A DNA stretch of 64,000 nucleotides, taken from assembly GCA_016748015.1 (NCBI GenBank), contig JAAOMT010000003.1:1058373-1122372 (forward strand), written 5' to 3'. Both the position numbers and the translations under genes were made by a program. Shown in pieces: positions 22,412 through 48,270 of this stretch (position 1 is the first letter of the stretch; each line of letters opens with the position of its first letter). The notes beneath the pieces are model-generated. The model was not told where the DNA came from. It saw only the letters and a list, made by a program, of their open reading frames with translations, and searched no databases. Origin of the DNA: Geosiphon pyriformis uo1. Taxonomy: Eukaryota > Fungi > Glomeromycota.

Positions 22412-22997
22412 CATTCGGCGGAAAAAAGTCATGGGATACTTTACATTTTTATTATTGTGTTCCATGAATGATAAAAATATCTATAAAAATTTATTTATAA
22501 CTATATTAGCTATCTATAAATAGTAAGGAATGTATTAAAATAACAATTATTAATCAAATCAAAGATATAATTAACGATATTTAATTCGCGTTTTTTTTAT
22601 CAACATAAAATTTTTCGGGATTTTTTTTGATAAACATGAATATTCAAAAATCTAAAGTTCAATTTTAAGACTTGGATGGCTCAAAAACATCTCAATTTAC
22701 TTTCTAAATGGCCAGCACAATCCGATTTGAATCCAATAGAGGATTTATGGGATTATTTACAAAAACAACTCAAAAAACGAAATCCGCGCCCGAAAATAAT
22801 CACAAATTATTCCTCGCGTTACAAGAAGAATGGCAAGCAATTCCAAGAAATATCTACATAAATTTGGTTACTAGTGTATCTAGACGTATTGAAGAATGTA
22901 TTAGAAAGGAGGGTGGACCAACTAGTCATTAAGTATTAAATAAAATAAAAAGTTATTAAAGAAATAATAGTGTCCCATGACTTTTTTCCGCCGAGTG
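22412..22997 (+). mobile_element. Internally deleted (MITE-like) Tc1/mariner element
   Basis: ~29-bp TIRs CATTCGGCGGAAAAAAGTCATGGGATACT (22412-22440) and AGTGTCCCATGACTTTTTTCCGCCGAGTG (22969-22997); TA on both sides (22410-11, 22998-99); transposase C-terminal remnant WPAQSDLNPIEDLW..LQEEWQAIP..RRIEECI with a frameshift. Confidence 0.92.
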
Positions 22998-23087: not shown

Positions 23088-26000
23088 TTAATCGTCATCA
23101 CGTTCTCTGCGACCTTTTTTGGGTGGGGTTTCGAGAAGACCACCAAATGACCTTTTTTGTTCTGGGGCCTTTCTCTTAAGATGCCTATGTGCACGCGAAT
23201 GGGCAAGTGCAACATCATTTGCATGGTCACAAATTTTTGTCAGTGTGGCCTAAAAATAATGAAAATAATGATAAGACTCTATGTTATCAATTATAATAAG
23301 GATGATAAAATATGCAAATACCCTGGTATTTGACATTGATACATAAAAACTTTCGAGTAATGCAAGTGTTTTGAGAGTGTTGGGCATCTTCGTATGAGAA
23401 ACCTTTCCCAAGCGCAGCACATTCGTTGCTTTGCAATCCATAGCATAAACTTCATGATCCCATCCTTGCATAAGCATAAAATATTGCATTAATTAGGATT
23501 TCAAAATTTTAAGATTGTATTTCTTTTGCTTACCCCATGACTGCATGCCCAAAACATATGTTCTATGGAGATCATTTTCGGGTGCATGGCAATTAGCTTT
23601 GTAAAATGTATAAAGGACGTCACGCATAGTCACGGCTAAATCAATCCTATCTTGGAAAATCTTCTTGCGATGGGCCTCTGGTAAGCCACCACTCCGTAAA
23701 CCAATGGCAGCTTCCAGATTATTGGCACTATTTTTTAAAGTGCCGCGGAAATCGCATTTTTGCCCGACACGGGCACGAAGCACAACTGAACGACCTTCAT
23801 TTCGGCGTTGGGCCGATGCCCAACAGGCAATCTCCCCACTACAAAATTGTGGGATACAATAAATAAATAAATAAAATTCGTTAACATATATATTTTTTTT
23901 TTACTTACACATCCATTTTTAGCTCACTCTTATTTAAAAATCTCTTTCGTAACATATTTGGAAAAGCGTTGTCAAACGCAGCCTCAGATACTGGAAGATC
24001 TACTTCGGCAAGATTCTCAGCACTACAAAATAAAATTTCATTAGTAAAAAAATAATATGTCGTCAAAAATTATATATTGTTCCACTTACTATGTGACGAC
24101 AGCACGCCTAATAGCAGCAATTACGTCCTTCTCTTCGTTGCTAAGTTTAATCTTGTTTTTATTTTCAATAAACTCAGCACTCACTTGGTCGATTGCATTA
24201 ATAATTAATATATCTCCTTGGCTTTTCGTTATCTAAAGTATATTATAATATTAGTAATATTTTAAAATAATAAAATTCAAAATCTAGCTACCTTTTCAAC
24301 TTCATCAAAAAAGTAGTACACTGCAGGTGGCACATCCGATTCAACTAGCCTAACATCAGTTTCAAAATTTTCCATTAGTTCCTTCCAATCATCATCTGAC
24401 GGAAAAAAGGACTTGATTGGATTATTGTCATTAGTTAAATCGAGAATGTTCCAGTAGGCAAGACTAAAAATAAAATTTTATTAAAAATCACACAAATATA
24501 ATAACTCATAACCTTGATAAACTTACCACAAATATTTTTGCGCCTCCGGAATCGTTTTAACATATTCTGCCAACACATCACCGACATTAGTTCCACTACG
24601 TAATATCCACGACCGCTGATGAGTTACCACTGGTTGGGATTCAACGCGTTCCACAAAAGGACAACAAAAACGGCTATCAGCGTTTTCTTCATTGCTGACA
24701 TTGTTGCAGCCGTCTTTGTTATCAAAATCGTCGACCTCATCATCCCCACCATCGTGTTCTTCCAGAGCTGCAACAGTGTCATGATGAGGCAGTTCACGAG
24801 AACCCTGTGCATGTGGCTTTTCAGCAGCTTCTAATACCTCCAAGGCATCGATTGGGGCATTGATCTTTTGGACCCGAGTTTGCCCATTTATTTGCCTCCA
24901 GAATTTTACGACGTCTGGAGTTAATTTCTTTCATAAATGAAAAAAGAGAAGTTAGTTATGCCTCACAATTTTTTATTGTTGAACGATGGCATCCCATCCC
25001 CAGTATTCCAAGGAGGAATAGTACCCCCATAGGATTGTTTGCAAGAACGGAGGAATAGTATCCCCCCTGGGTTGTGCAACGCGCGAGGAATAGTATCCCA
25101 TACTCGAGCTCCTTAAGAAGGTAATACCCCCTTGAAGGTCTTTCTTGCAAAAGGAAGAATATGTCCCCCCCCGAGCTGCGCTTGTGAAGTGGAAAATCTG
25201 TCGCGACATTATCCCTCACAATTTTTTATTGTTGAACGATGGCATCTCATCCCCAGTATTCCAAGGAGGAATAGTACCCCCATAGGATTGTTTGCAAGAA
25301 CGGAGGAATAGTATCCCCCCTGGGTTGTGCAACGCGCGAGGAATAGTATCCCATACTCGAGCTCCTTAAGAAGGTAATACCCCCTTGAAGGTCTTTCTTG
25401 CAAAAGGAAGAATATGTCCCCCCCCGAGCTGCGCTTGTGAAGTGGAAAATCTGTCGCGACATTATCCCTCACAATTTTTTATTGTTGAACGATGGCATCC
25501 CATCCCCAGTATTCCAAGGAGGAATAGTACCCCCATAGGATTGTTTGCAAGAACGGAGGAAGAGTATCCCCCCTGGGTTGTGCAACGCGCGAGGAATAGT
25601 ATCCCATACTCGAGCTCCTTAAGAAGGTAATACCCCCTTGAAGGTCTTTCTTGCAAAAGGAAGAATATGTCCCCCCCCGAGCTGCGCTTGTGAAGTGGAA
25701 AATCTGTCGCGACATTATCCCTCACAATTTTTTATTGTTGAACGATGGCATCCCATCCCCAGTATTCAAAGGAGGAATAGTACCCCCATAGGATTGTTTG
25801 CAAGAACGGAGGAATAGTATCCCTCCTGGGTTGTGCAACGCGCGAGGAACAGTATCCCATACTTGAGCTCCTTAAGAAGGTAATACCCCCTTGAAGGTCT
25901 TTCTTGCAAAAGGAAGGAATAGTACCTCCCCCGAGCTGCGCATACATTTTTTTTGCGAAGAGATCCTACTATTTAAAAACCATGTGACGCACCTGGTTCG

Positions 26001-26344
26001 CCAACAATATCGCGATCCGCTTTTTGAGCCGGCTGATTGGGTCATCTTTGTCTTTGTTGACAGAGGCTATTTTTTTAAGTGCGTTGATGTATTTATTCCG
26101 CCAAACTGCTGGACGGTTAATGATATTGTAAAGTAAGATCAGAGGTTTCATGCAGTTTAAGAAATCTGTATAGGACCACACATCAACTGGCGTCTTCCTG
26201 AAGTAAAAACCCACTGCTTCCCCTACAAGAAAATAATAATTTAGAAATCACAATTGCAACGACACGAATTTTCAACGCCAAAATGTAGAGCCAAGTCTTA
26301 CCTAGAGAACCTGAGGTGAAGATCGAATCAGCTTCGATAGACAT
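23088..26344 (-). CDS. Intact 9-exon hypothetical protein (~570 aa) with a C-terminal divergent PD-(D/E)xK/restriction-endonuclease-like domain and a basic C-terminal NLS
   Basis: Exons 26344-26302, 26222-25993, 24927-24527, 24463-24292, 24232-24090, 24022-23909, 23838-23534, 23464-23322 and 23249-23088 are all GT-AG, phase-compatible and stop-free (1713 nt). C-terminal pattern SEAAFD..GEIACWASAQRRNEGR..GQKCDF..LEAAIGLRSGG..KKIFQDRIDLAVTMRD..VLGMQSWG..VYAMD. The gene model is solid; the fold assignment is from recalled family patterns only. Confidence 0.72.
24956..25941 (-). repeat. 253-bp higher-order tandem repeat (about 3.9 units) made of seven ~31-48 nt hairpin-forming subunits, filling intron 2 of the 23088-26344 gene
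   Basis: Units start at 24961, 25214, 25467 and 25720. Units 1-3 differ by single bases; unit 4 is more divergent. Internal motif on the + strand is GGAGGAATAGTAYCCCC. The intron is 25992-24928 (GT..branch AACTAAC..AG). Confidence 0.95.
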
Positions 26345-26619: not shown

Positions 26620-28670
<2,051 letters not shown>

Positions 28671-28840
28671 TTACTATTAATAATATTATTTATTGTGTTT
28701 TAAAATATTTTTTTTAATTTCAAAGATTTACACACATTTCTGTTAATTAAATATATAAATTGAATTTTGATTGGTCAGAACTATTCAAAAAGGTTGAAAA
28801 TTATAAACATAGTTGAGTTTTTTATTTTGTAACAACTATC

Positions 28841-34712: not shown

Positions 34713-36079
34713 ATTTATTAAAATTTTAAAAATAAAAATACATATTAAAAAAAATATAATAAATTACTTTAAATTTTACTTATTTTGTTTATTTATAAAT
34801 TATTGAATTTTTATTTTGGTTATATTTTCTTATTATAAAAAAATGTTAATAATATTATAAAAAATTATAATAAGCAAAAAAATTAAAGATATATTTTAAA
34901 GATTATATTAAATATTATAGTTATAAATATAAATTTAGTGATTATTATTAATCAAAAAAAATCAATTTTTATGATTATTATAATTGTAAATCAAAATATT
35001 AAAATTGTAAATAATATACTAATATTAATTTTTTATAAAATATCTTATTTATAACTTTTATAATTTTTATTAATATATATATTATCTATTATATTTTAAT
35101 ATTCAATATTATGTTTCAATATATTAAAATATTTCTAAAAATATTTTTAACAAAATTCAACTTCTTACTAAAAATAAAAATCTGTTAATTAATACTTAAA
35201 AACTATTAAAAATAAAATTTTTAACTGAATTTATTCTTAATTATAATTTTTTAAACATAATACAAAAATATAAAGTTTATATTAATAAAAAACTAAATAT
35301 ATTATGTTTATTAATAATATTTTTTAACTATAAATTATATAATTATTAATAGACTATTGAATTTGAATTAAACAATAAAAACCAATTTATTTACTAATTT
35401 TAAATATTATTAATACAGATTGTTTTTTAGTTAAAGTATTATAATATTGTTTTAAATAACAATACTACAAAAACCAATTAATATTAAATATCACTTTTAT
35501 TTTTTTTTGTCATAAAAAATAATATTAAATTACATAATATTATAAAAGCTTTATATTAAATAAAATAATTAAATTATATAAATAAATCTTAAAATATACA
35601 AAAAAAACAATAATAATAGAATTATTAATATTTATTATAAATACAAATCTTGTAATTAATATTATAATTAAACAAATATATAAAACTATATATTTAATTC
35701 ACTATATTTTTTACATCAATAAAAATCTACCAAAAAATCTTAAATTTAAATTTTATAATTAATATAATAGTTTTATTTATAACTTTTTTACATATTATAA
35801 TACAGTCAAATTTGAGATAATTCATATTAAAATAATTTATAATCTTTAATAAGCCATAATATTTTGAATCTACCAATTTGGTAGTTAAAAAATTTTTATG
35901 TTTATAACTTATATCTGTAATATCCAATAATTTATAACTTTTTACTGTTAGTATAGATTATTTCAAATGTTAGATTTAGTTTAAATTCTGCTAATTTTGA
36001 TAAAATTGCAATAAAACAAACCAATATTTCTATAACTAAAAATACAATATGATAAAATAATATTATTTATTTAACAAAA

Positions 36080-36316
36080 TAATTATTAATTATGTAAATA
36101 ATTAAGTCAGAGTTTTAAATTGTTCTAAGTTCTAAATTATTATTAATTATATGAGTAATTAAGTTAGAGTTTTAAATTGTCTTAAGTTTTAAATTATTAC
36201 TAATCTTGTGAATAATTAAGTCAAAGTTTTAGATTGTTCTAAGTTCTAAATTATTATTAATTGTATGAGTAATCAAGTTAGAGTTTCGAATTGTTCTAAG
36301 TTCTAAATTATTATTA
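36080..36316. repeat. 57-bp tandem repeat (left part; continues at 48089-48270 beyond the inserted Tc1)
   Basis: ATTAAGTYAGAGTTTTAAATTGTTCTAAGTTCTAAATTATTATTAATT units start at 36101, 36158, 36215 and 36272. Confidence 0.9.
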
Positions 36317-37571: not shown

Positions 37572-40500
37572 TGTTACAGTTCAAGAATTTAATAGGAATT
37601 ATAAATAATATAAATTAGCCAATCATAAAATAGCACAGCAATAATTTATAAAAAGAAATGATTTACAAATAACAGCAAGCACTATTTTACAATAGCATTA
37701 AGCACTATTGTGCAATAGCAGCAAGCACTATTTTACAATAGCAGCAAGCACTATTTAGAAATAACAGAAATAGAGTATTACAAGACGTTATTTTGTAAAA
37801 CAATAATTATATATATATATACAATAGTTTTTAATAATGAAAAAAAACAAGCTTCAACAAAAAACAACAAATATCTAAATAAAATCTTATTTAAAAAGAA
37901 TTAATAAAAAGAATTGAATGAACATCACAATTGCAAAATTAACAATAAAATTCACATACCCTCTTTAGCAAATGAAACTATCATTCCATCTTTAAACCCT
38001 TTGGAAGAATAATCCCTGATCAAAATTATTTACGTGGTTACTAATTAAATTGAAAAAAGCTTTATTATATACTTAAGAAAATTGCAAAAAGATCATTAAT
38101 ATTCCATGTTTCTAGATTAGAAAAACACATCAGGCAATTGCAAAAATAGCCTCAGAGAAGACTCTAAAACAGCAGATAAATTTCAGATTAGCCTCTGGAA
38201 AGGAATACAAAACATACAAAGACAATTAGAATTAAAGAGAAGACTTACATCACAACATCAAGAGAAAACCTTCAGTACATTATCATTAATATCCAATACA
38301 TAAAATAAAGAAACTTATGAAAGACTGATTGCAATTAAAACAGGAGATCAACAATTAAAATATACCAAAAAAACCATTCCGTAACATTTGGTGAACTCTA
38401 CAAGAAAAGAAATTCAAAAAGAAAATAATAATTAGCAATAATTCATTGCTAAAAAGGAAGAAACAAAAGTGGTGACAAAAACCTCTACCCTTACTGTTTT
38501 TGAATTCTGCTGTGCTATTTACACACAAAATCAAAGTAATCTTGGATTACCAAAAGGGTGTTGTCCAGCAGAATCTGCTCTCACTTATTATATCAATGCT
38601 AGAATAAATTACCACATAGGAAAAGAAAAAGAATCACACAACGCAAAACTTGGATTGTATAGAGAATTATCACAATACATTACAAAAAAAGTAGCAGTAA
38701 TAGCTACAACTATTGTTAAAATTCATCGCAAAATTGAGCAATACGCCAACAAAAATTTTCCAATATCCACAAAAAACACCAGAAAATGCATCCACAATCC
38801 AGAAATTAATTACAAAGAAAATCAGCAAAAATTAGGAACACCTGCCCAAATGTCCAAGAAAAATGTCACGCAATTAGTAAAAAAACAATGTCTTTATTTA
38901 CCAGAAAAAAGATCTTACTATTTTTTCCCAGATAATAAAATCCAACTTCCATTAGGAGCTGTATTATCATTTACATCAACTCTACAAACACCAAGAACTT
39001 CTAATTATACTGATAAACTTAAACAATGTGATTGGGGAAATATACCAATAACAAAAGGATATTCATTGCTATTTCAAAACCCCTTTTTTCAACCAAAATT
39101 TGGAGCAGGGTTTGAAAACCATGAAAAAGAGTCTGAATCAGAATCTGGAAAAACCAGTGAAAAAACAAGCACAAGACCAGTCACAGAAACAAGCAGCCAG
39201 TTCAGAAACCAAAAAACTCATGATCAAAAAGAAGAACCAGATATAAGAGAAGCCACCTTTAGGGGCACTCAAGAAAATATCATCCCACCTTCTCTTAGAC
39301 CAATAAACTCACTAGCAGAAAACAATGACAAAATGACCACACCTTACATTGTGCGATTAACAGATTTCTTAGGAGAGGAAGAAGAAATGGATGTGCACAT
39401 GTGGCTCAGAGAAGCACAAAAAGCCATCCAGGCAAATAACTGAAATGATCAAAGAGCAATCCAAACATTACCTTTCTTCTTGAAAGGCACTGCCAACTCA
39501 TGGTATTAAAGCTTGGAAATAAAACCCACAAGCTTTGCCAAATTTAAAGACACACTCTTGGAATATTTTAGTGACCCAAACGCCATAATTCAACTACAGA
39601 ATGAATTCAATACTATTAAGCAAGGTATAAGTGAAACTATCACCCAATACCTTGCTTGATTCAATCGAATTTACCATCAAATTGAAGCAATTGAGCAAAG
39701 ATACTATACTGATTCTCAGGTTTTAAATCAATTTATTAGAGGATTAAAAAGCAGCATTTTAGGAAGAGTACGTCCTGTCCACTCTAATTCCTTACCAGAA
39801 GCTATTATGCTTGCTAGAGCCCTTGAATTGGCTGAGAAAAAAGCTAACCATAGTCAAATAGTTAACATAGTGATTGAGGAAAACAAAACAGAAACTTTAA
39901 AGAAGAAAGTAGCATAATTAAGGAAGGAACTCTCTAAGAAAATAGAAAGTTACCTCATCTCAGACCCAAGAAGAAATAACACATACCAAACATCTCAAAG
40001 ATGCAACCAAGAATTCAGTGGCAGCCAAAATAATCACTCATTGCATCAGGACTTCAGAACAAAAACATGCGCCTGCCATTTTTGCAAATGTATAGGACAT
40101 TTGATTGGCCAATGTCAAACATGAATAATGCAAGAGACACACAAAAATAATTATTATACACCCCCCCCAAATGCTCAGAAATCAATATACACCAATACTA
40201 TGTTAATACCTCACTATGTACCAAAATTAAGGAACTTATCAGCAATAACCAGTGATTCCAAATTCAAACTGGCATCCAGAGTTTCAAAGCCAGCCAGTAT
40301 TAGGCGAAAACACAATTATTATTAGAAATCCTAATTGCATAGGATCTAATTAGCAAACAAATGCAAACTACCCAAATTTCCAGCCAACTTACCTTAATAT
40401 ATTGAAAAACTTAAATCTTGGAAATATTAATGATAACATACTTGAAACTGAAAACATTACTAATAGCCAAAACTTGATCCAAACAATACCACCAGCCATT

Positions 40501-48088: not shown

Positions 48089-48270
48089 TAATTGTATAAA
48101 TAATTAAGTCGAAATTTCAAATTGTTCCAAGTTTTAAATTATTATTGTATAAGTAATTAAGTTGGAGTTTTGAATTGTTCCAAGTTTTAAATTATTATCA
48201 ATCAAATTAGAGTTTTAAATTGTTCCAAGTTTTAAATTATTATTAATTGTGTAAATAATTAAGTCGAATT
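48089..48270. repeat. 57-bp-family tandem repeat (right part)
   Basis: Same unit as 36080-36316; removing the Tc1 at its TA restores a continuous unit. Confidence 0.85.

Follow-up and report, generated by a model that had tools for sequence, protein, structure and literature searches.

Intron 2 of a nuclease-like gene (G9A89_023312) of the fungus Geosiphon pyriformis uo1 (Glomeromycota) is much longer than the other introns of this gene and is filled by a tandem repeat whose units could fold into RNA hairpins. It raises the question whether such an array is a working RNA, a plain minisatellite or the remains of an older element. The gene lies on the minus strand of the stretch analysed here, which has a length of 64,000 nucleotides (nt; contig JAAOMT010000003.1 of assembly GCA_016748015.1, positions 1,058,373 to 1,122,372) and is called the window below. 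The original prediction, made from the letters of the window, proposed strand-specific hairpins with variable linkers, which would act as guide-like small RNAs, as a scaffold or sponge, or as a splicing switch. We consider it probable that the array arose recently by higher-order tandem duplication (about 4 x 253 nt) from a diverged, older and conserved cis-acting intronic RNA element.

Anatomy of the repeat in intron 2

The 253-nt repeat announced for the 1,065-nt intron was borne out. Tandem Repeats Finder gave a period of 253 nt with 3.9 copies and 98% matches in window 24956-25941, and an independent repeat search gave four copies spaced exactly 253 nt, while the seven remaining introns of G9A89_023312 are 59-79 nt. 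Compared in register, units 2-4 agree pairwise at 214-215 of 216 positions (99%), and unit 1 agrees with them at 208-209 of 216 (96%). Seven sub-units of 27-45 nt make up each unit, with a common motif that is composed of a G-run, (A/G)UACUAU and a pyrimidine-run. The sub-units align mutually in the motif and, in part, also in the linkers, four of which share TTGCAA. Therefore the 253-nt unit is an old, decayed array with a period of about 36 nt, and the whole is a higher-order repeat.

It means that there are not about 27 hairpin-linker modules with different linkers, as was proposed, but four near-identical copies of seven. Linkers are variable within one unit only; across the four units they are 96-99% identical. 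A repeat-spacer array that yields guide-like small RNAs was rejected on the same grounds, because the linkers are the same in each unit, related with each other through TTGCAA and partly self-complementary (linkers 1 and 4).

With no more than two mismatches allowed, the pattern GGGRTACTATTCCTC matches the window 13 times, always on the minus strand, against 0.06 matches expected. UACUAU is present in three sub-units (m3-m5) of every unit. The loops of m1 in units 2-4 and of m2 have left the motif (GACAUAUUC and GUAUUAC), and this drift suggests relaxed constraint. The array has no coding potential, with a period that is not a multiple of three and a stop in every frame of each unit.

A single paralogous copy in the genome

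The unit and its motif are found at only two loci in the 128 Mb of the genome, the window and, 270 kb apart on the same contig (C787), a paralogous fragment (match at positions 1356256-1356425). A third motif match (L012) lies within a coding region and was discarded as chance. In the fragment, exon 2 is frameshifted and has 73-83% protein identity, and the intron consists of a single unit, 85% identical, with five motif copies. Because the paralogue has one unit, the four-fold amplification is younger than the duplication which separated the two loci. Without its extra units, the intron of the window would be about 300 nt. The caveat of the original prediction that the array could be a minisatellite was thus right for the array as such, which is a young higher-order duplication.

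Confinement to the window and one paralogous fragment led us to reject a dispersed repeat, a transposable element (TE) or a miniature inverted-repeat transposable element (MITE). Apart from this fragment the linkers have no match elsewhere in the genome, and genome-wide searches with covariance model R1 (built from the homologues below) and with the CpG-type motif pattern gave nothing further. The expected co-occurrence of the motif with paralogues of the gene did not hold, since the other Geosiphon paralogues, found by a search with exon 7, have neither element nor motif.

Each full unit closes with ~37 nt (GAUAAUGUCGCGACAGAUUUUCCACUUCACAAG; 25173-25217 and equivalents) that resemble the 3' end of the paralogue intron, with 27 of 45 matches. 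Therefore the first duplication may have taken along the 3' splice region, which may have left pseudo-3' splice sites inside the array.

A conserved RNA element in the same intron of homologous genes

Homologues which carry the N-terminal exon of the window gene (WSY..FL) form a subfamily of eight loci in seven species: Paraglomus brasilianum (P0112), Ambispora leptoticha (P0132), A. gerdemannii (P0024), Funneliformis geosporum (P0111 and P0113), Glomus cerebriforme (P0141), Acaulospora morrowiae (P0106) and Dentiscutata erythropus (P0109). The intron stands at an identical codon boundary (before K-x-T/N) in P0104 (the public protein of G9A89_023312), P0111 and P0112. In the three loci with clean annotation (L031, L033, L035) intron 2 is 279-287 nt and the remaining introns are 56-98 nt. 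In Paraglomus (L030) it is 289 nt after discounting an annotated mini-exon. This exon of 38 amino acids (L030:1902-2015, ..GLIHLIAPLRGGTVPQLSMGAVL) in the P0112 model has no counterpart in the homologues and is probably an annotation artefact, being part of the structured intron. The models of L032 and L036 leave out exon 3 and so have gaps of 430 and 432 nt there; a stretch of about 280 nt with the motifs is still present in them. The Ambispora leptoticha copy (L032) has also a stop codon in the exon following the intron.

Each homologue intron has four related motif copies, all in sense orientation. They read AGGUAACGYCCU in five loci, AGGUGACGYCCU in two, and GGGAGGUWCCGUCCCU or GGGUGYCGUCCU in Paraglomus. 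The loops are uniform within a gene, UAACG four times (L031-34, L037) or UGACG four times (L035, L036), with Paraglomus as an exception. Between gene copies the loops switch jointly (UAACG, UGACG and, in Geosiphon, UACUAU) while the spacers stay conserved, and this concerted switching is beyond what independent mutation can explain. In four other subfamilies, represented by Rhizophagus P0087, Endogone P0103, Cetraspora P0090 and Paraglomus P0081, the introns are short and lack both element and motif. A metagenome scan with the conserved motif pair yielded nothing but unrelated coding repeats rich in G+C.

The predicted core of the element is about 168 nt and consists of two three-way junctions in tandem, the domains D1 (~77 nt) and D2 (~91 nt). 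A domain is composed of a closing stem, a long hairpin (8-bp outer stem, 4-bp inner stem AAGG/CCUU, 6-nt loop) and a short hairpin, AGG-UAACGC-CCU. This two-module form is the minimum free energy (MFE) fold at six of the eight loci; A. gerdemannii keeps D2, and its D1 folds alternatively. The z-scores of the MFE for sense and antisense strand were -2.9 and -1.7 in Ambispora, -3.35 and -2.25 in Paraglomus, and -0.9 and -1.3 in F. geosporum P0113.

The paired positions covary. In alignment A3, a MAFFT alignment of D1 that was not fitted to any structure, 94% of the cells are paired, compared with 46-60% when the partners are slid; three pairs are changed on both sides, and the covariation score was reached by none of 500 shuffles. 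D1 and D2 are homologous modules, since a model of D1 detects the D2 domains with 41-48 bits. In alignment A6 (14 modules), changes on both sides occur in 18 of 28 pairs, and covariation scored 0.571, compared with 0.181 in shuffles and no more than 0.195 in slid controls; the fitting of A6 to the model biases its value upward. G-U pairs make up 12% of the paired cells, and the sense strand therefore fits better (94% paired) than the antisense strand (82%). When a D2 model was built without Paraglomus, its best two matches were D2 and D1 of Paraglomus (18.7 and 13.9 bits). No Rfam family matched the introns of the homologues.

Between Funneliformis (L031) and Paraglomus (L030) the alignment score of intron 2 is 49.5, compared with at most 15 for shuffles (z = 28), and eight other intron pairs of these genes have z from -1.0 to +1.0. 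It means that only the element was kept. The suspicion that the Geosiphon motif is an artefact of G-runs loses ground here, as the motif sits in an intron that has, in the homologues, a conserved covarying sense RNA with four matching stem-loops.

Five of the loci (L031, L032, L033, L035, L036) share 84-95% DNA identity over 3-4 kb including introns and flanks, in species of different orders; for L031 and L032, also from different orders, it is 84% over 4 kb with the flanks. L036 is a mosaic, 93-99% like L031 from exon 4 onward, and in exon 2 and intron 2 the likeness is about 80%. Such sequence patterns suggest recombination among copies and perhaps horizontal movement, or else contamination between the single-nucleus assemblies. 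In these close copies introns are as conserved as exons, so those pairs are uninformative on selection.

A related element with four loops was located on C637 (Table 1). Kinship between its host gene and that of the window was not established by BLASTP (E = 0.035 for the N-terminal exon) or by hhalign (probability <1%).

Relation of the Geosiphon array with the conserved element

The array and the element of the homologues share intron position, phase and strand, and the ancestral length of about 300 nt fits. GGUACUAUUCCUC from Geosiphon agrees with GGUACCGUCCCUC from a Paraglomus hairpin in 10 of 13 positions, and the three differences are all transitions, including the change from CpG to TpA. 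Collinear anchors are found at both ends, GCAAAA...AGCUC..GGAGGUA at the 5' side and AGUAUGGG.UGCC.UC...AAAAA..GUGAG at the 3' side, and UAU precedes the short hairpins in Geosiphon and Paraglomus alike. We infer from this likeness that the Geosiphon motif may be homologous with the AGGUAACGCCCU hairpins of the homologues, its CpG core presumably mutated to TpA. An Rfam search of window 24800-26100 gave a best E-value of 2.3, far under the gathering scores.

The predicted fold of the Geosiphon unit was compared with shuffled sequences. The 253-nt unit has z = -2.1 in its natural register, where 5 of 200 shuffles did as well, and z = -1.5 when the register is rotated; for unit 3 the MFE is -79.1 kcal/mol (z = -2.1). 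The plus strand of the unit has z = +0.7, and therefore the strand asymmetry in folding is real but modest. From the strand-specific hairpins first proposed it stands that short stems can form and that the sense strand is favoured, while the statistical support for them is weak. Linker 1 pairs with linker 4 in a stem of 9 bp in the MFE fold of the unit and also of the paralogue, so the linkers are to be seen as structural strands and not as spacers. The MFE fold of the unit holds junction-type modules, and a CCCAG/CUGGG closing stem appears only in the fold of the rotated register. The comparison of stems within Geosiphon is one of two sequences (85% identical) with stems of purine and pyrimidine runs.

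Proposed origin of the array

If the array descends from the conserved element, the ancestral intron 2 would have been about 280-300 nt long, with two tandem three-way-junction modules and four hairpins that have one loop in common. The core of this loop would have changed from a UACCGUC-like form to UACUAUU (CpG to TpA) in the Geosiphon lineage, and small duplications may have added hairpins up to 5-7 per unit. Head-to-tail duplication of nearly the complete element would have come next, first a single time (unit 1 against the rest, 96%) and two more times very recently (99%), likely by unequal exchange or replication slippage. The array would be transcribed in the pre-mRNA and removed with the intron by means of the unique 5' splice site and the ACUAAC, which lie outside the array.

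We infer that the ancestral element acts in cis on RNA. Most plausibly, its identical stem-loops would serve as a platform on which a loop-specific partner controls splicing or retention of the intron. Therefore the proposal of a scaffold or splicing switch is plausible for the ancestral element, as judged from the covarying four-loop sense RNA of the homologues, and less likely for the array. The four-fold amplification is probably selectively neutral.

Several points speak against this reading. The alignment of the Geosiphon intron is above noise with Paraglomus (z = 3.4) and at noise with Ambispora or Funneliformis (about 0). Covariance models R1-R3, which were made from the homologues, had no match in the array or the paralogue (best 3.9 bits), a blank that is a weak test and not decisive because R3, the broadest model, also misses the related four-loop element on C637. 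The folding energy of the unit only marginally beats that of the shuffles. G-runs pair with any pyrimidine run, so the retention of stems between window and paralogue is uninformative. The youth of the amplification is the single ground for calling it neutral.

Alternative explanations

The array itself could be functional, which we regard as unlikely, though a serious candidate. In this reading, which corresponds to the scaffold and autoregulation proposals of the original prediction, about 20 identical UACUAU stem-loops in eight junction-type modules would act on a loop-specific partner as a scaffold or sponge. The partner might be the nuclease-like protein of the gene itself, and its binding would adjust how intron 2 is spliced or retained and hence the protein level. 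The constraint on the ancestral element with its four matching loops, the concerted change of loops between gene copies, and the position of every motif copy of the window on the transcribed strand agree with this idea, as do the z-score of the natural-register unit, its junction modules and the fold common with the paralogue. However, units 2-4 are 99% identical, so that selection on copy number would be invisible; the deviating loops of m1 (units 2-4) and m2 fit with relaxed constraint; and the covariance models do not match. In the unlikely event that the array works, it would belong, as a form enlarged four-fold, to a new class of intronic RNAs that regulate in cis, and would titrate the partner, in a transposon-like gene family of arbuscular mycorrhizal fungi (AMF).

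A plain intronic minisatellite, unrelated to the element of the homologues, would explain the array if the resemblance were a chance product of G-runs and pyrimidine-runs. The noise-level alignments with Ambispora and Funneliformis, the failure of the covariance models on the array and the marginal fold z-scores fit with it, and AT-rich minisatellites are common in the window. But chance would have to bring together the same intron position, phase and strand with an unusual ancestral length of ~300 nt, a motif identical in 10 of 13 positions to the Paraglomus hairpin with only transitions between them, and collinear anchors at both ends of the element. Moreover, the paralogue retains the motif set after 15% divergence. 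We think this explanation quite improbable.

The motifs might also work at the level of DNA, as protein-binding sites of 13-17 bp in an intronic enhancer or a transposon-like unit, with the array as an expanded cluster. Such an element would suit a mobile or recombining, multicopy family whose loci are mosaic and still 84-95% identical across orders over 3-4 kb, and a concerted change of the four motif copies would fit with co-evolution with a binding protein. Compensatory changes, however, keep the stems, including stems outside the motifs, the 12% of G-U pairs would be mismatched in duplex DNA and on the opposite strand, and all motif copies have one orientation. It is thus very unlikely.

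Inflation or collapse of the copy number by the assembler is hardly credible, because unit 1 differs at about 8 sites, units 2 and 3 have one private site each, unique intron ends flank the array and the public gene model spans it.

The host gene and its protein

The region is AT-rich and eukaryotic in character, with G+C of 9-20% between genes and 35-42% within them. A model of nine exons was read from the sequence; translated exon by exon, it is identical (100%) with the public protein P0104 of G9A89_023312, including the junction of exons 2 and 3, which across intron 2 reads ...LLANQ|KLTPD... Exons were searched singly, and the public P0104 was used for alignment and folding.

The branch-point consensus of fungi is UACUAAC. 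The ACUAAC in the unique 3' end of the intron was assigned as the likely branch point because it matches this consensus. The array as a branch-point decoy was considered and rejected: UACUAU does not fit CURAY, and the likely branch point ACUAAC is outside the array.

The AlphaFold model of P0104 has a predicted local distance difference test (pLDDT) score of about 90 over residues 190-545. A restriction-endonuclease-like fold was recognized at residues ~325-527 from this model with VIA-align, which gave mL37 (Z 10.7), mS30 (Z 10.4) and the BpuSI nuclease domain (Z 9.7; root-mean-square deviation 3.4, 146 aligned), and further DrdV (Z 9.6) and HsdR (Z 8.1). Foldseek had no significant match for the model in the PDB, and there is no Pfam family for the host protein or the family of its homologues. 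D397 and E410 are nearly invariant, and K395, K403 and K427 are conserved close by; E410 is followed by A-A, not by x-K, and the canonical D...ExK catalytic motif is not evident in the alignment. So the label "nuclease-like" holds at the level of the fold and not beyond it. A search with exon 7 gave a small protein family, with 79 representatives at 50% identity, which is restricted to Glomeromycotina and Endogonales.

Features of the locus and its neighbourhood

Table 1. Positions of the host gene, the repeat and related elements (window coordinates unless a contig is named)
Feature	Position	Strand	Remarks
Host gene G9A89_023312	23088..26344	-	nine exons, 570 amino acids, read from sequence
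Exon E1	26344-26302	-	translation matches P0104 100%
Exon E2	26222-25993	-	translation matches P0104 100%
Exon E3	24927-24527	-	translation matches P0104 100%
Exon E4	24463-24292	-	translation matches P0104 100%
Exon E5	24232-24090	-	translation matches P0104 100%
Exon E6	24022-23909	-	translation matches P0104 100%
Exon E7	23838-23534	-	translation matches P0104 100%
Exon E8	23464-23322	-	translation matches P0104 100%
Exon E9	23249-23088	-	translation matches P0104 100%
Intron 2	24928..25992	-	1,065 nt, phase 0; 5' splice site GUGCGU, 3' splice site AAG
Unique 5' part of intron 2	25942..25992	-	51 nt; holds GCAAAAAAAAUGUAUGCGCAGCUC, similar to the start of the conserved element, GCAAAAUCUGUGAAGCUC (local alignment to L032)
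Repeat unit 1	25688..25941	-	254 nt; oldest; motif-1 form GGGGGAGGUACUAUUCCUUCC, nearest to the paralogue and Paraglomus
Repeat unit 2	25435..25687	-	253 nt
Repeat unit 3	25182..25434	-	253 nt
Unit 3, m1	25425-25386	-	
Unit 3, m2	25385-25353	-	
Unit 3, m3	25352-25321	-	
Unit 3, m4	25320-25282	-	
Unit 3, m5	25281-25255	-	
Unit 3, m6	25254-25218	-	
Unit 3, m7	25217-25173	-	
Linker 1 core, unit 3	25395..25403	-	UUGCAAGAA; 5' strand of a predicted long-range stem
Linker 4 core, unit 3	25292..25300	-	UUCUUGCAA; 3' strand of the linker 1 stem, which encloses m2-m4
Repeat unit 4	24961..25181	-	partial; stops after m6 at GUGAGG
Unique 3' end of intron 2	24928..24960	-	33 nt; likely branch point ACUAAC (24956-24951), pyrimidine tract, 3' splice site
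Paralogous fragment	C787:1356036-1356425		exon 2 and whole intron, then unrelated AT-rich DNA
C637 element	C637:722601-722701		four GUUGUCGGU loops after an exon with WSF..FL motif

Pieces of a DEAH-box helicase lie head to head with the nuclease-like gene on the plus strand (window 26750-28700). Motifs II, III (VIIMSATL) and VI are recognizable in them, and the open stretches are interrupted by introns or stops. Directly downstream of the nuclease-like gene, short open reading frames on the plus strand (window 22676-22932; LNPIEDLWDYLQKQLKKR, LQEEWQAIPRNIYINLVTSVSRRIEECIRKEGGPTSH) look by eye like the C-terminal end of a DDE transposase of Tc1/mariner type and probably represent a piece of a transposon. 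Other tandem repeats, all in AT-rich intergenic DNA, were found at window 36077-36316, 37668-37767 and 48091-48244 with periods of 57/114, 46 and 53 nt and 80-88% matches; minisatellites are common in the Geosiphon genome.

Meaning of the element

The repeat points to an intron with a strongly covarying RNA that has no Rfam family and occurs in at least four orders of Glomeromycotina. A conserved cis-acting RNA in a recombining, possibly mobile family of nuclease-like genes would be, if true, a new regulatory element. To our knowledge, almost nothing is known about RNA-level control in Glomeromycotina. With loops that have mutated and copies that have been added, the Geosiphon array would offer a natural variant for testing which parts of the element matter.

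Comparison with known systems

Arrays of clustered regularly interspaced short palindromic repeats (CRISPR) have some outward likeness with the Geosiphon array, in which hairpin-forming repeats alternate with non-repeat segments of 10-20 nt beside a gene of nuclease fold. But the "spacers" of Geosiphon are identical in each unit, mutually related and able to pair together, and the array is placed in a eukaryotic intron.

In fungal introns with the thiamine pyrophosphate (TPP) riboswitch (THI4/NMT1 type), a three-way-junction RNA controls the splicing of its own pre-mRNA. The likeness would be one of working only, as an analogy. There is no TPP match with Rfam, the modules are duplicated with identical loops instead of forming a ligand pocket, and the host is not a thiamine gene. 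The MS2 and PP7 operator hairpins and the U1A element are repeated stem-loops that recruit several protein copies, and U1A autoregulates its host mRNA in this way. Here also the analogy would be in the way of working, through repeated short stem-loops with one loop sequence, whereas the Geosiphon array has an intronic position and its partner is hypothetical.

With intronic minisatellites the array has in common the head-to-tail order, the constant period, the 96-99% identity, the older decayed sub-repeats of about 36 nt, the copy number of 1 against about 4 between paralogous loci, and the absence of dispersed copies. It is different in that it appears to descend from a conserved covarying RNA, and its G+C content is ~45%, compared with AT-rich neighbours.

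The last comparison is with the three-way-junction intronic RNA of the AMF nuclease-like genes, which has no Rfam family. In Geosiphon the closing stems are short or shifted, hairpins are inserted, two loops have decayed, and the element is amplified four-fold and unscored by the models of the homologues. Both lie on the sense strand in the long intron after the N-terminal exon, and both have loops that are different between genes and, with the exceptions named above, uniform within a gene. Tandem modules are seen in the homologues, to which the predicted junction-type modules of the Geosiphon unit may correspond.

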